This document shows, one piece after another, positions 34,588-41,800 of a DNA stretch of 64,000 nt. This DNA comes from Phyllobates terribilis (lineage: Eukaryota). The notes beneath the pieces were generated by a model. The model worked only from the letters and a program-made list of their open reading frames with translations. It was not told the origin of the DNA and ran no database searches. The stretch spans positions 25,110,001 to 25,174,000 of the forward strand of contig NW_027362764.1 of NCBI RefSeq assembly GCF_046119375.1, written 5' to 3'. Positions within the stretch are counted from its first letter, which is position 1. Each line of letters opens with the position of its first letter. The position numbers and the translations under genes are program-made.

Positions 34588-35667
34588 TATATAATTATAT
34601 ACAGGAGATGCACAGGTTATACCGGCTATACATATATAATTATATACAGGAGATGCCCAGGTTATACCGGCTGTACATATATAATTATATACAGGAGATG
34701 CCCAGGTTATACCAGCTGTACATATATAATTATATACAGGAGATGCCCAGGTTATACCGGCTGTACATATATAATTATATACAGGAGATGCCCAGGTTAT
34801 ACCGGCTGTACATATATAATTATATACAGGAGATGCCCAGGTTATACCAGCTGTACATATATAATTATATACAGGAGATGCACAGGTTATACCGGCTGTA
34901 CATGTATAATTATATACAGGAGATGCACAGGTTATACCAGCTATACATATATAATTATATACAGGAGATGCCCAGGTTATACCGGCTGTACATATATAAT
35001 TATATACAGGAGATGCCCAGGTTATACCGGCTGTACATATATAATTATATACAGGAGATGCACAGGTTATACCAGCTATACATATATAATTATATACAGG
35101 AGATGCCCAGGTTATACCAGCTGTACATATATAATTATATACAGGAGATGCCCAGGTTATACCAGCTGTACATATATAATTATATACAGGAGATGCCCAG
35201 GTTATACCAGCTGTGCATATATAATTATATACAGGAGATGCCCAGGTTATACCGGCTGTACATATATAATTATATACAGGAGATGCCCAGGTTATACCAG
35301 CTGTACATATATAATTATATACAGGAGATGCCCAGGTTATACCGGCTGTACATATATAATTATATACAGGAGATGCTCGGGTTATACCAGCTGTACATAT
35401 ATAATTATATGCGGGAGATGCCCAGGTTATACCAGCTGTACATATATAATTATATACAGGAGATGACCAGGTTATACCAGCTGTATATATATATAATTAT
35501 GTAGTTCATATAGAGCAATGACGTACAAGAACATTATGATGTAAAAATACAAAATTTATTATAATCCAAAATTAAATATTGACAAACAAATCAAAGTATA
35601 TTGGCGCAGATGCAATAGCAGCGGGCAAAAAAATAGGTACACAGGGCTCAATCCAACATATGATATA

Positions 35668-37269
35668 CAGTGGTGGCCAAAAGTATTGGCACCCCTGCAG
35701 TTCTGTCAGATAATACTCAGTTTCTTGCAATCACAAATTCTTTGGTCTTATTCTCTTCATTTAATTTCCTTGCAAGGAAAAAACACAAAAGAGAATGAAG
35801 CAAAAATCAAATCATTGATCATTTCACACAAAACTCCAAAAATGGGCCAGACAAAAGTATTGGCACCCTCAGCCTAATACTTAGTTGCACAACCTTTAGC
35901 CAAAATAACTGGGAACAACCGCTTCCGGTAACCATCAATGAGTTTCTTACAATGCTCTGCTGGAATTGTAGACCATTCTTCTTTGACAAACTGCTCCAGG
36001 TCCCTGATATTTGAAGGGTGCCTTCTCCAAACTGCCATTGTGAGATCTCTCCACAGGTGTTCTATGGGATTCAGGTCTGGACTCATTGCTGGCCACCTTA
36101 GAAGTCTCCAGTGCTTTCTCTCAAACCATTTTATAGTGCTTTTGGAAGTGTGTTTTGGGTCATTGTCCTGCTGGAAGACCCATGACCTCTGAGGGAGACC
36201 CAGCTTTCTCACACTGGGCCCTACATTATGCTGCAAAATTTGTTGGTAGTGTTCAGACTTCATAATGCCATACACACGGTCAAGCAGTCCAGTGCCAGAG
36301 GCAGCAAAGCAACCCCAAAACATCAGGGAACCTCCGCCATGTTTGACTGTAGGGACCGTGTTCTTTTCTTTGAATGCCTCTTTTTTTTCCTGTACACTCT
36401 ATGTTGATGCTTTTTCCCATCTACTTTTGTCTCATCTGACCAGAGAACATTCTTCCAAAACGTTTTAGGCTTTCTCAGGTAAGTTTTGGCTTTTTTATGT
36501 CGAGGGGTAAGAAGTGGGGTCTTCCTGGGTATCCTACCATACAGTCCCTTTTCATTCAGGCGCCGACGGATAGCACGGGTTGACACTGTTGTACCCTCGG
36601 ACTGCAGGGCAGCTTGAACTTGTTTGGATGTTAGTCGAGGTTCTTCATCCACCATCCGCACAATCTTGCGTTGAAATCTCTCGTCAATTTTTCTTTTCCG
36701 TCCACATCTAGGGAGGTTAGCCACAGTGCCATGGGCTTTACACTTCTTGATGACACTGCGCACGGAAGACACAGGAACATTCAGGTCTTTGGAGATGGAC
36801 TTGTAGCCTTGAGATTGCTCATGCTTCCTCACAATTTGGTTTCTCAAGTCCTCAGACAGTTCTTTGGTCTTCTTTCTTTTCTCCATGCTCAATGTCGTAC
36901 ACACAAGGACACAGGACAGAGGTTGAGTCAACTTTAATCCATGTTAACTGGCTGCAAGTGTGATTTAGTTATTGCCAACACCTGTTAGGTGCCACAGGTA
37001 AGTTACAGGTGCTGTTAATTACACCAATTACAGAAGCATCACAGGATTTTTCAAACAGTGCCAATACTTTTGTCCACCCCCTTTTTTAGGTTTGGTGTGG
37101 AATTGTATCCAATTTGGCTTTAGGACAATTCTTTTTGTGTTTTTTTCATTGAAGACAAATTAAATGAAGATAATAATACCAAAGAATTTGTGATTGCAAT
37201 CATTATCAGGAAGAAACAGAGTATTATCTGACAGAATTGCAGGGGTGCCAATACTTTTGGCCACCACTG
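35668..37269 (-). mobile_element. Tc1-D, near full-length Tc1 (1602 bp) with frameshifted transposase 35874-36886
   Basis: TIRs cagtggtggccaaaagtattggcacccctgc and its reverse complement, TA flanks. MEKRKKTKELSEDLR.., [32 protein letters not shown]. Confidence 0.95.
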
Positions 37270-37559
37270 TAGATTAGTAGTAGAAAGTCACTAAAATAGG
37301 ACATTTATAAATCCAACACATGGTATAGATTAATAAATAAGAAGTCGCTGGAATGGGACATATATATAGATGTGAACATGTCAAACATGTATCATGGCCA
37401 GGTTGGTAGTATATAAACTATCAAGAAGGCTACAGTGAGCCACTAAAGTGCACAGTGCATGGCTAAATACAAGAAAGATAGTCACCATTAAGGAGCAAAA
37501 ATAAATGCAAGATAGCAGAACTTACATGTGTGGGTATCAGGAATGCATACCCGGGTACT

Positions 37560-38812: not shown

Positions 38813-38862
38813 GTCACTACCCCCAGAAGAAGGCAAAGTGCCGAAACGCGCGTAGGGGTGAC
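38813..38862 (+). ncRNA. Minimal type I hammerhead ribozyme-like motif (variant core CAGAAGA), right-arm copy
   Basis: Stem I acccc/ggggt (plus gtc/gac); core CAGAAGA(A); stem II ggc-aaagt-gcc; GAAA; palindromic stem III acgcgcgt; GUA triplet at 38852-38854. Confidence 0.6.
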
Positions 38863-41800
38863 AGTACCCGGGTATGCATTCCTGATACCCACACATGTAA
38901 GTTCTGCTATCTTGCATTTATTTTTGCTCCTTAATGGTGACTATCTTTCTTGTATTTAGCCATGCACTGTGCACTTTAGTGGCTCACTGTAGCCTTCTTG
39001 ATAGTTTATATACTACCAACCTGGCCATGATACATGTTTGACATGTTCACATCTATATATATGTCCCATTCCAGTGACTTCTTATTTATTAATCTATACC
39101 ATGTGTTGGATTTATAAATGTCCTATTTTAGTGACTTTCTACTACTAATCTATATCATATGTTGGATTGAGCCCTGTGTACCTATTTTTTTGCCCGCTGC
39201 TATTGCATCTGCGCCAATATACTTTGATTTGTTTGTCAATTTTTAATTTTGGATTATAATAAATTTTGTATTTTTATATCATAATGTTCTTATACTTCAT
39301 TGCTCTATATGAACTATTGTCGGAGACGTTGAACGGATTTGGTCTACTTTGATATGTGACCTGTGTGGTCAAACAACTTTGTTTCATATATAATTCTATA
39401 CAGGAGATGCCCAGGTTATGCCAGCTGTACATATATAGTTATATACAGGAAAAGCCCAGGTTATACCATCTGTACATATATAATTTTATACATGAGATGC
39501 TCAGGTTATACCAGCTGTACATATATAATTATATACAGGAGATGCCCAGGTTATACCAGCTGTACATATATAATTATATACAGGAGATGCTCAGGTTATA
39601 CCAGCTGTACATATATAATTATATACAGGAGATGCCCAGGTTATACCAGCTGTACATATATAATTATATACAGGAGATGCTCAGGTTATACCAGCTGTAC
39701 ATATATAATTATATACAGGAGATGCCCAGGTTATACCATCTGTACATATATAATTATATACAGGAGATGCTCAGGTTATACCAGCTGTACATATATAATT
39801 ATATACAGGAGATGCTCAGGTTATACCAGCTGTACATATATAATTATATACAGGAGATGCCCAGGTTATACCAGCTGTACATATATAATTATATACAGGA
39901 GATGTCCAGGTTATACCGGCTGTACATATATAACTATATACAGGAGATGTCCAGGTTATACCGGCTGTACATATATAGTTATATACAGGAAAAGCCCAGG
40001 TTATACCATCTGTACATATATAATTATATACAGGAGATGCCCAGGTTATATCAGCTGTACATATATAATTATATACAGGAGATGCCTGGGTTATACCGTC
40101 TGTACATATATAATTATATACAGGAGATGCCCAGGTTATACCAGCTGTACATATATAGTTATATACAGGAAAAGCCCAGGTTATACCATCTGTACATATA
40201 TAATTATATACAGGAGATGCCCAGGTTATACCATTTGTACCTATATAATTATATACAGGAGATGCTCAGGTTATACCGGCTGTACATATATAGTTATATA
40301 CAGGAAAAGCCCAGGTTATACCATCTGTACATATATAATTATATACAGGAGATGCTCAGGTTATACCAGCTATACATATATAATTATATACAGGAGATGC
40401 CCAGGTTATACCGGCTGTACATATATAATTATATACAGGAAAAGCCCAGGTTATACCATCTGTACATATATAATTATATACAGGAGATGCCCAGGTTATA
40501 CCAGCTGTACATATATAATTATATACAGGAGATGCCCAGGTTATACCAGCTGTACATATATAATTATATACAGGAGATGCCCGGGTTATACCGGCTGTAC
40601 ATATATAATTATATACAGGAGATACCCAGGTTATACCATCTGTACATATATAATTATATACAGGAGATGCCCAGGTTATACCAGCTGTACATATATAATT
40701 ATATACAGGAGATGCCTGGGTTATACCGGCTGTACATATATAATTATATACAGGAGATACCCAGGTTATACCATCTGTACATATATAATTATATACAGGA
40801 GATGCCCAGGTTATACCAGCTGTACATATATAGTTATATACAGGAAAAGCCCAGGTTATACCATCTGTACATATATAATTATATACAGGAGATGCCCAGG
40901 TTATACCAACTGTACATATATAATTATATACAGGAGATGCCCAGGTTATACCAGCTGTACATATATAATTATATACAGGAGATGCCCGGGTTATACCGGC
41001 TGTACATATATAATTATATACAGGAGATGCCCAGGTTACACCAGCTGTACATATATAATTATATACAGGAGATGCCCGGGTTATACCGGCTGTACATATA
41101 TAATTATATACAGGAGATGCCCAGGTTACACCAGCTGTACATATATAATTATATACAGGAGATGCCCAGGTTATACCGGCTGTACATATATAGTTATATA
41201 CAGGAAAAGCCCAGGTTATACCATCTGTAGATATATAATTATGTACAGGAGATGCCCAGGTTATACCAGCTCTACATATATAATTATATACAGGAGAAGC
41301 CCAGGTTATACCAGCTGTACATATATAATTATATATAGGAGATGCCCAGGTTATACCAGCTATACATATATAATTATATACAAGAGATACCCAGGTTATA
41401 CCAGCTGTACATATATAATTATATATAGGAGATGCCCAGGTTATACCAGCTGTACATATATAATTATATATAGGAGATGCCCAGGTTATACCAGCTATAC
41501 ATATATAATTATATACAAGAGATACCCAGGTTATACCAGCTGTACCTATATAATTATATACAGGAGATGCCCAGGTTATACCAGCTGTACATATATAATT
41601 ATATATAGGAGATGCCCAGGTTATACCAGCTATACATATATAATTATATACAAGAGATACCCAGGTTATACCAGCTGTACCTATATAATTATATACAGGA
41701 GATGCCCAGGTTATACCAGCTGTACATATATAATTATATACAGGAGATACCCAGGTTATACCAGCTGTACCTATATAATTATATACAAGAGATACCCAGG

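Follow-up and report, generated by a model that had tools for sequence, protein, structure and literature searches.

A palindrome with minimal hammerhead-like motifs in Phyllobates terribilis, probably left by a Penelope-like insertion into satellite DNA

The locus was analysed in a window of 64,000 nucleotides from Phyllobates terribilis (contig NW_027362764.1 of assembly GCF_046119375.1, positions 25,110,001 to 25,174,000, forward strand); all positions below count from the first letter of this window, and the features are collected in Table 1. An earlier interpretation made from the letters alone, referred to here as the sequence-only reading, had described a head-to-head palindrome with arms of about 1 kb and few mismatches. 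This palindrome is real. Its arms are 1052 nt long and differ at 8 sites (99.2% identity, approx. 0.8% divergence), the right arm (38265-39316) pairs with two pieces of the left arm, 38157-37270 and 35667-35502, and a gap of 107 nt (38158-38264) separates the arms. Between the two left-arm pieces lies a Tc1/Sleeping Beauty-type transposon, and the earlier view that it was inserted later into the left arm is borne out: the insert of 1602 bp is flanked by TA on both sides, has near-identical inverted ends and interrupts the left copy. Its transposase is broken into two ORFs on the minus strand, the first matching HTH_SB (5.5e-21) and HTH_Tnp_Tc3_2 (6.6e-17) and the second DDE_3 (1.7e-10) in Pfam.

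Table 1. Features of the palindromic locus (window positions; strand given where it applies)
Feature	Position	Strand	Remarks
Left copy of possible 12-bp target-site duplication, ATATATAATTAT	35489..35500	.	flank sequence, in 45-bp satellite
Left inverted copy, outer piece	35502..35667	-	166 nt, 4 mismatches vs 39151-39316; last 69 nt of the unit missing
Tc1/Sleeping Beauty-type transposon in left copy	35668..37269	-	junctions TA/CAGTGG...CCACTG/TA, matching inverted ends
Left inverted copy, inner piece	37270..38157	-	888 nt, 4 mismatches vs 38265-39152; 5'-truncated by 98 nt
Hammerhead-like motif, left copy	37562..37604	-	mirrors 38818-38860; descriptor match, core start 37598
Junction filler TTCCTGACT	38158..38166	.	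9 nt, duplicates 38174-38182
Right-hand full copy of the ~1.2-kb repeat unit	38167..39385	+	5' end central, 3' end outer
CpG-rich stretch, putatively promoter- or enhancer-like	38416..38620	+	CpG observed/expected ratios, GC boxes
TATATAAA box	38787..38794	+	downstream of two inverted CCAAT boxes
Hammerhead-like motif, right copy	38818..38860	+	43 nt, PLE minimal type I kind; descriptor match
Candidate mini-intron	38897..38959	+	63 nt; GTAAGT, pyrimidine tract, AG; sequence only
Internal tandem repeat	39056..39168	+	two copies of 56 bp, in AT-rich 3' half of the unit
3'-terminal 69 nt of the unit	39317..39385	+	right copy only; missing from left arm, found in paralogue contigs
Right copy of possible target-site duplication, ATATATAATTCT	39386..39397	.	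flank sequence

The arm forms part of a family of dispersed repeats, members of which could be observed in contigs from sequencing runs of other samples. At a likeness of at least 80%, 732 contig pieces of the DNA run X1 and 542 of the DNA run X2 match it, most of them being 90-99% alike. The paralogue contigs of both runs cease to match at 38167-38169 on the 5' side and at 39380-39387 on the 3' side. Since the family unit runs from about 38167 to 39385, most of the 107-nt gap is the 5' end of the right-hand full copy; the length given before for the spacer was right, but it is not a neutral spacer. In the same way the end formerly placed at 39385 is the true end of the right copy and not that of the arm, which lies at 39316. 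The structure is one full 1.2-kb unit together with an inverted copy truncated at both ends, and not a symmetric element. The filler at their junction belongs to a 12-nt direct repeat (38156-38167 and 38172-38183; TRF row 38157-38187). A match to MIR946 in Rfam (38096-38327, 51 bits vs 190) was rejected, as it is the centre of the palindrome folding as a hairpin.

The satellite, which has a 45-bp unit, flanks the structure on both sides in direct orientation, and its phase would fit a duplication of 12 bp; thus the whole double structure occupies one target site. The duplication itself is ambiguous, because in a 45-bp array a 12-bp duplication looks like a 33-bp deletion. The mir-1277 matches obtained with Rfam were discarded as the 45-bp satellite.

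The unit is non-coding, as had been proposed: its longest stop-to-stop frame (in 38167-39385) has 88 aa, and no Pfam domain could be detected in the ORFs of the unit or the arm. The link to RT and GIY-YIG ORFs that had been called for was not found, either in the unit or elsewhere in the 64-kb window; in the neighbouring interruptions of the satellite, a Pfam search of the ORFs gave Tc1 pieces only and no PLE (Penelope-like element) enzyme. Four CACGTG boxes (38448, 38484, 38574 and 38612) fall within the CpG-rich stretch, and they are followed by the inverted CCAAT boxes (ATTGG, 38731 and 38772). With the textbook spacing between a TATA box and the start, the TATATAAA box would place the start of transcription near 38817-38820, at the beginning of the hammerhead block. 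AATAAA occurs at 39258. The GTAAGT donor-like motif noticed before at 38897 is indeed there, but no spliced joint of the candidate mini-intron was found among the contigs of the sequencing runs, and a contig of X10 (possibly an RNA run) covering 38766-38914 crosses the donor unspliced.

The two hammerhead-like motifs read outward from the centre. Their direction and the putative cut site after A38854 had been given correctly by the sequence-only reading. The core is not canonical. Helix I is UACCCC/GGGGUG and helix II is GGCA/UGCC; the core CAGAAGA is followed by an extra A (38831), G38832 pairs with C38842 (G10.1-C11.1), and beyond the GAA box come the palindromic helix III, ACGCGCGU, with A15.1-U16.1 and A17 (38854) present. 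The minimal type I architecture with a palindromic stem III is therefore in place as claimed, including the short helix I and the extra base after A9. However, the conserved first box reads CAGAAGA instead of CUGANGA, with A for U at position 4.

The Rfam search that had been suggested before detects the motif only in a scan of 171 nt (Hammerhead_1, RF00163, E 0.78), where its 14.6 bits are below the gathering score of 34, and no hammerhead was found at E<=1 across 15 kb (30000-45000). A relaxed descriptor of the minimal hammerhead ribozyme (min-HHR), which permits any base at position 4, gave 2 matches in the 64 kb, solely these motifs, and 0 in 200 Markov shuffles, both strands being searched. 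The motif is not a chance match. In each DNA run 38-40 contigs cover the motif block and 4-12 its flanks; the loose contig ends on its two sides agree poorly with each other and the flanks of the block are unrelated. What the paralogue contigs show is conservation of the block alone, with one majority change, A>C at 38836, in loop 2. Other genomic copies seem to retain the A at position 4, and it would thus be a trait of the lineage and the block a kept module of it. Self-cleavage is doubtful because of the core A and the Rfam score under the threshold. The monomer fold is unremarkable (z = -0.86), which agrees with a motif dependent on dimerisation; the dimer cofold reaches -43.5 kcal/mol, against -28.4 for a pair of monomers, and its helix III is formed between the two molecules over 8 bp.

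A pattern scan of metagenome and viral contigs returned no matches to the exact motif block. With a looser pattern 59 loci were obtained there, almost all of them chance matches in GC-rich bacterial sequence; just two, L031 and L050, which are AT-rich and have the canonical CUGA core, resemble real eukaryotic min-HHRs, and no relatives of the 1.2-kb unit were found among the loci of the scan. When the literature was searched for hammerheads with U4A, nothing but papers on the U4 snRNA came up.

Four features of min-HHRs emerged without being built into the descriptors used by Cervera & de la Pena (2014, PMC4209133), namely a base between 9 and 10.1, G10.1-C11.1, a palindromic 15.2-16.2 and a short helix I, and the motif described here carries 4/4 of them. 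The same study gives 4-6 bp as the criterion for helix I of PLE min-HHRs and reports paired min-HHRs on opposite strands, 100-700 bp apart (PMC4209133). In PLEs the HHRs are located in the pLTRs, and an inverted 5'-truncated copy adjoining the 5' end is the typical insertion (Craig et al. 2021, PMC8557442). This is the architecture found here, where the inverted copy starts 98 nt into the unit and abuts the 5' end of the full copy. Like PLE insertions (Evgen'ev & Arkhipova 2005; PMC4209133; PMC8557442), the locus is head-to-head with one truncated inverted copy; it also shares with PLEs the minimal type I motif, oriented as the element is, and a target in simple or satellite DNA. Close to the motif lie a promoter-like region and a donor-like site, as they do in the pLTR of Penelope. 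The locus differs from PLE insertions in being a discrete 1.2-kb non-coding unit with no RT/GIY-YIG ORF and no direct tandem (pLTR pair) at the locus, in having A and not U at position 4 of the core, and in an inverted copy that has lost its 3' end as well. Such a 3' truncation is a feature not specified by the published PLE schemes.

The locus had been called Penelope/retrozyme-like, and only the first half of this label could be retained. Animal non-LTR retrozymes (Cervera & de la Pena 2020, PMC7229834; bioRxiv 10.64898/2026.07.22.740005) are likewise non-coding and non-autonomous, carry a type I hammerhead and are known from amphibians, and it has been argued that they derive from PLE pLTRs (PMC7229834; Li, Clavereau & Pollet 2026, bioRxiv 10.64898/2026.07.22.740005). 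However, they form head-to-tail arrays with units of 51-972 bp (amphibian mean 316 bp) and circular RNAs (PMC7229834; bioRxiv 10.64898/2026.07.22.740005), whereas the window holds two inverted copies of a 1.2-kb unit and no tandem, the direct repeats nearby being the unrelated 45-bp satellite. Since there is no tandem array, the layout is not retrozyme-like, while the head-to-head layout of PLEs stands.

L1 elements undergo twin-priming inversions. These resemble the present structure in the inverted segment arising at integration, with priming from the second target strand at an internal RNA site, and in the short filler or microhomology at the internal junction, but in them one part of a single RNA copy is turned round and nothing is duplicated. 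At the locus approx. 1 kb is present twice, and therefore two templates or a template switch would be needed.

Taken with a probability of approx. 70%, the locus is one insertion of a non-coding Penelope-like retroelement unit of about 1.2 kb into the 45-bp satellite, the unit being either pLTR-like or a non-autonomous derivative. Such an insertion would have left the full copy with its 5' end at the centre, and the second copy, inverted and truncated at both ends, would have been joined to that 5' end through the 9-nt filler, templated nearby. Reverse transcription could plausibly have been primed from both strands of the target, or the template could have been switched, in the course of a PLE-type integration; the Tc1 element would have landed in the left copy afterwards. 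We infer both the PLE-mediated mobilisation and the formation of the palindrome at integration. No RT/GIY-YIG ORF lies in the window, and the link to a PLE enzyme is drawn from the type of the motif and the layout. Each copy carries an outward promoter-like stretch (CACGTG, GC boxes, CCAAT, TATA), putatively active as a promoter, and the PLE-type minimal hammerhead block begins about at the expected transcription start. To judge by its core, the A4 block probably cuts poorly or not at all, its catalysis having presumably been lost. The structure is most likely an inert relic, and an ordinary one, since its layout has already been described for Penelope-type elements.

The A4 block could also be a selected variant core of the whole Penelope-derived lineage in the frog and not a product of decay, which we hold to be unlikely. 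Many repeats with flanking sequences that can no longer be aligned retain the block at an identity of about 90% or higher. If A4 were selected, the hammerhead would still cleave in vivo, possibly in dimeric form or assisted by host factors; alternatively, the block would serve another step of retrotransposition, e.g. as a mark of the 5' end of the RNA or as a recognition site for the RT.

A working ribozyme, as proposed by the sequence-only reading, with RNAs from the outward promoters cleaving themselves after A38854 in dimers formed via the palindromic helix III, is distinctly improbable, even though the hammerhead architecture is complete save for position 4, the dimer fold is favoured and the retention of the block across many contexts suggests some constraint. 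With A at position 4 the conserved uridine turn is broken, and substitutions of U4 reportedly slow minimal hammerheads about 100-fold or more. Since the two motifs sit on opposite strands, a single transcript has only one sense copy of the motif. No RNA ends or RNA-only evidence could be detected among the contigs of the sequencing runs, and in vitro cleavage is poor even for PLE min-HHRs that are canonical (PMC4209133).

No better are the prospects of a non-PLE element, e.g. a long-TIR/foldback DNA transposon or a solo LTR, which merely contains a hammerhead-like string. Such an element would fit the lack of a PLE protein linked to the unit here and the promoter-like, U3-style layout with TATA and AATAAA. 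However, the paralogue contigs delimit one unit of 1.2 kb, the two ends of which do not form inverted repeats, and the joints listed for the paralogues include none that changes strand. The hammerhead block, which belongs specifically to the PLE minimal type, is common to many other repeats that begin at the block. A foldback DNA transposon, a solo LTR and a Helitron were rejected, since the unit is without TIRs, TG...CA ends and Helitron ends.

A fold-back artefact of the assembly, or an inverted duplication made after the insertion, would account for the palindrome without an integration product, and this is very improbable. Long-read assemblies can produce palindromes with short spacers, no single contig spans both arms and the spacer between them, and one X1 contig (1 mismatch) departs from the reference at 38167, the 131 letters to the left not matching; it comes either from a twin copy elsewhere or from a different junction in that animal. 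An artefact would be symmetric, and thus the arms count against it, as they differ at the 8 sites, are truncated differently at both ends and contain the Tc1 element in one only. Moreover, both alleles at 38677 are present in X1 and X2, and the start of one X2 contig coincides exactly with the arm boundary, 38265; this contig has 3 mismatches relative to the right arm, and within its range the two arms likewise differ at 3 sites (38282, 38637 and 38677). A later inverted duplication would need breakpoints exactly at the edges of the element, because the outer ends meet satellite in direct orientation.

Just as little can be expected of the locus as a source of dsRNA, whether by a read-through hairpin of the arms or by outward promoters transcribing the 45-bp satellite in both senses, with products that would feed small-RNA silencing of the satellite or the element family: the arms are nearly identical, the promoter-like boxes point outward into direct-orientation satellite arrays and X10 has satellite contigs as well as its one exact match to 38766-38914, but the RNA nature of X10 is guessed, that contig begins upstream of the predicted start, as DNA would, and the left arm is interrupted by the Tc1 element.

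With the Penelope-like insertion as the preferred reading, a striking 1-kb palindrome is explained for annotation as a standard product of Penelope-type integration. The locus offers a dated and well-bounded example of it, given the divergence of the arms and the later Tc1 hit. The conserved-looking A4 lineage, if confirmed, would bear on the question whether PLE hammerheads act by cleavage at all.

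The inverted repeat was recovered by the repeat search and by blastn. The right arm (38265-39316) pairs with 38157-37270 (888 nt, 4 mismatches) and further with 35667-35502 (166 nt, 4 mismatches), and the gap between the arms is 107 nt. The insert splitting the left arm was assigned to the Tc1/Sleeping Beauty type with a broken transposase because of its TA flanks, its inverted ends and the domains on two minus-strand ORF pieces (HTH_SB and HTH_Tnp_Tc3_2 in one, DDE_3 in the other). By these results the anatomy described in the sequence-only reading, i.e. the arms, the 107-bp spacer and a Tc1 in the left arm, was correct. 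The Rfam match to MIR946 at 38096-38327 (51 bits vs a gathering score of 190) is the palindrome centre folding as a long hairpin and no real microRNA.

Features of the double structure (window coordinates; the block is the hammerhead-like motif)
Feature	Position	Remarks
Hammerhead-like motif	38818-38860 (+); mirror 37562-37604 (-)	both copies
Tc1/Sleeping Beauty-type insert splitting the left arm	35668-37269	1602 bp; TA on both sides, near-identical inverted ends
Four CACGTG boxes and GC boxes		in a CpG-rich stretch upstream of the block
Two inverted CCAAT boxes		upstream of the block
TATA box, TATATAAA	38787-38794	upstream of the block
Candidate 63-nt intron	GTAAGT 38897; AG 38958-38959	with pyrimidine tract; seen in the sequence

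Contigs from public sequencing runs of the same organism were aligned to 38100-39420 at a likeness of at least 80%. Since the two DNA runs gave 732 (X1) and 542 (X2) pieces, the majority 90-99% alike, the arm is a member of a dispersed repeat family. Three contigs, one near-identical to the reference and two about 10% diverged, cease to match at 38167-38169, each with 131-135 letters beyond, and at the opposite end contigs cease to match at 39380-39387. Thus the family unit spans about 38167-39385 (1.2 kb), and a full right-hand copy contributes, as its 5' end, 98 of the 107 "spacer" bases. In the left, inverted copy the first 98 nt of the unit and its final 69 nt (39317-39385) are missing. 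Nine bases join the copies (38158-38166, TTCCTGACT); they repeat 38174-38182 and look like templated filler. The ORF search of the unit found no frame above 88 aa and no Pfam match. Summed contig depth climbs from the 5' part of the unit to the 3' part, as frequent 5' truncation would give, but such depth is unsuited to ranking parts of a stretch and the rise was given no weight.

A palindrome of this kind could be a fold-back assembly error, and among the contigs shown none spans its whole centre. Such an error is argued against by eight differences between the arms, by truncations that are unlike at both ends and by the presence of the Tc1 in one arm only. Moreover, two independent samples have both alleles at 38677, and one X2 contig has its precise start at 38265 and differs from the right arm at 3 positions, which is the number of arm differences in that range. 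The near-identical X1 contig departs from the reference at 38167; either it stems from a twin copy elsewhere or the junction is different in that animal. Of the eight arm mismatches, five (38282, 38677, 39075, 39292 and 39296) show the left-arm letter in almost every contig of other samples, with the right-arm letter seldom seen or missing; no X1 or X2 contig has T at 38282. These right-arm letters are either changes private to that arm, variation of the reference animal or errors of the assembly.

A 45-bp satellite flanks the structure on both sides (34588-35493 and 39385-42493). Since it has the direct orientation at both outer ends, there is a single target site for the double structure, and the head-to-head arrangement most likely arose at integration. 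The satellite phase is compatible with a target duplication of 12 bp (35489-35500 and 39386-39397, 1 mismatch), which, the array period being 45 bp, is indistinguishable from a 33-bp loss. The satellite is broken twice more, at 33443-34588 and 42493-45840 (the latter apparently by two copies), by Tc1/Sleeping Beauty-type pieces with short broken ORFs matching HTH_SB, HTH_Tnp_Tc3_2 and DDE_3. Its many Rfam matches to mir-1277 (about 25 bits vs 81) are no real microRNA. The window (1-64000) is a patchwork of minisatellite arrays of at least 10 kinds, whose periods are 27-60 bp and some of which exceed 8 kb, with an N run at 61584-61738; it resembles a repeat zone of heterochromatic or subtelomeric type.

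The motif consists of helix I UACCCC, the core CAGAAGA, an extra A, helix II GGCA-AAG-UGCC, GAA, helix III A-CGCGCG-U, A17 at 38854 and the helix I return strand GGGGUG. The hammerhead fold proposed earlier for each arm stood in its architecture; its core is non-canonical, with A in place of U at position 4 (A4). The Rfam Hammerhead_1 alignment spans the full model, and GAAACGCGCGU is identical to the model consensus. With 171 nt searched the score was just 14.6 bits (gathering score 34), and there was no match when 15 kb were searched. A custom descriptor (position 4 unconstrained, extra base optional, helices I and II of at least 4 bp, palindromic helix III) had no match in the 64-kb window besides the two motif copies and none in 200 shuffled ones, therefore the motif is not due to chance. 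Two copies cofold at -43.5 kcal/mol, vs -28.4 for two monomers, and the intermolecular helix III of the dimer has 8 bp. Changes of U4 were reportedly found by Ruffner et al. in 1990 to lower the rates of minimal hammerheads about 100-fold or more. Canonical minimal type I hammerheads (min-HHRs) of Penelope-like elements (PLEs) cleave poorly in vitro, and variants with exceptional core changes exist (PMC4209133). Four traits of PLE min-HHRs emerged unprompted and are all present in the motif: a short helix I, a base between 9 and 10.1, G10.1-C11.1 and palindromic 15.2-16.2 (Cervera & de la Pena, PMC4209133).

Each DNA run covers the 40 nt 38819-38858 with 38-40 contigs and the flanks with 4-12, and the loose contig ends before and behind them reach a consensus agreement of just 0.4-0.5. 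Thus the block is common to many otherwise dissimilar repeats, several of which seem to begin at it. Position 38836 (loop 2) is C in most contig copies. An A>T change at 38825 is not among the differences listed for the block-covering contigs; X9 and X10 list no A>T change anywhere, with four contigs of other contexts covering the block. From the copies compared we infer that A4 is a trait of the lineage and not decay private to the locus. In low-agreement consensus strings of other block-bearing families, a donor-like GTAAGT, GTGAGT or GTAAAAG follows about 30-40 nt downstream, and a CUGAUACC-like string occurs as well; this is a hint that the lineage may conserve a splice-donor-like site behind the hammerhead. 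Two AT-rich metagenome contigs (L031:2483-2512 and L050, minus strand, about 656-685), probably of eukaryotic PLE origin, have min-HHR-like strings with the canonical CUGANGA core and the GAAACGCGCGU helix III of the block; 57 other metagenome pattern matches were GC-rich, bacterial and by chance.

The usual spacing from a TATA box to the start site is 30 nt, which would place a predicted transcription start at the beginning of the block (about 38817-38820). The donor-like GTAAGT noticed earlier is present, with a chance expectation of about 30 per window for such a 6-mer. No spliced joint was found among the contigs aligned to the unit; the sole exact contig of X10, a run guessed to be RNA (38766-38914), is unspliced and begins upstream of the predicted start. 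The candidate intron would recall the 75-bp intron that the Penelope terminal unit (pLTR) houses together with a start site (PMC8557442).

PLE insertions are strongly 5'-truncated, and an inverted 5'-truncated copy next to the 5' end is typical of them (Craig et al. 2021, PMC8557442). Pairs of min-HHRs on opposite strands, 100-700 bp apart, are reported, and Xenopus tropicalis has about 9,000 min-HHRs (Cervera & de la Pena, PMC4209133). The Penelope half of the label "Penelope/retrozyme-like" holds for insertion architecture and motif type, although the locus differs from an autonomous PLE in having no ORF and from a canonical hammerhead in its core. The retrozyme half failed, there being no tandem; animal retrozymes are themselves argued to stem from PLE pLTRs (Li et al. 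2026, bioRxiv 10.64898/2026.07.22.740005).

The structure is thus real and non-coding: a Penelope-type unit with a non-canonical hammerhead block, inserted head to head and, at 0.76% arm divergence, fairly young. The locus is ordinary in kind, and the point of interest remaining is the conserved A4 core.
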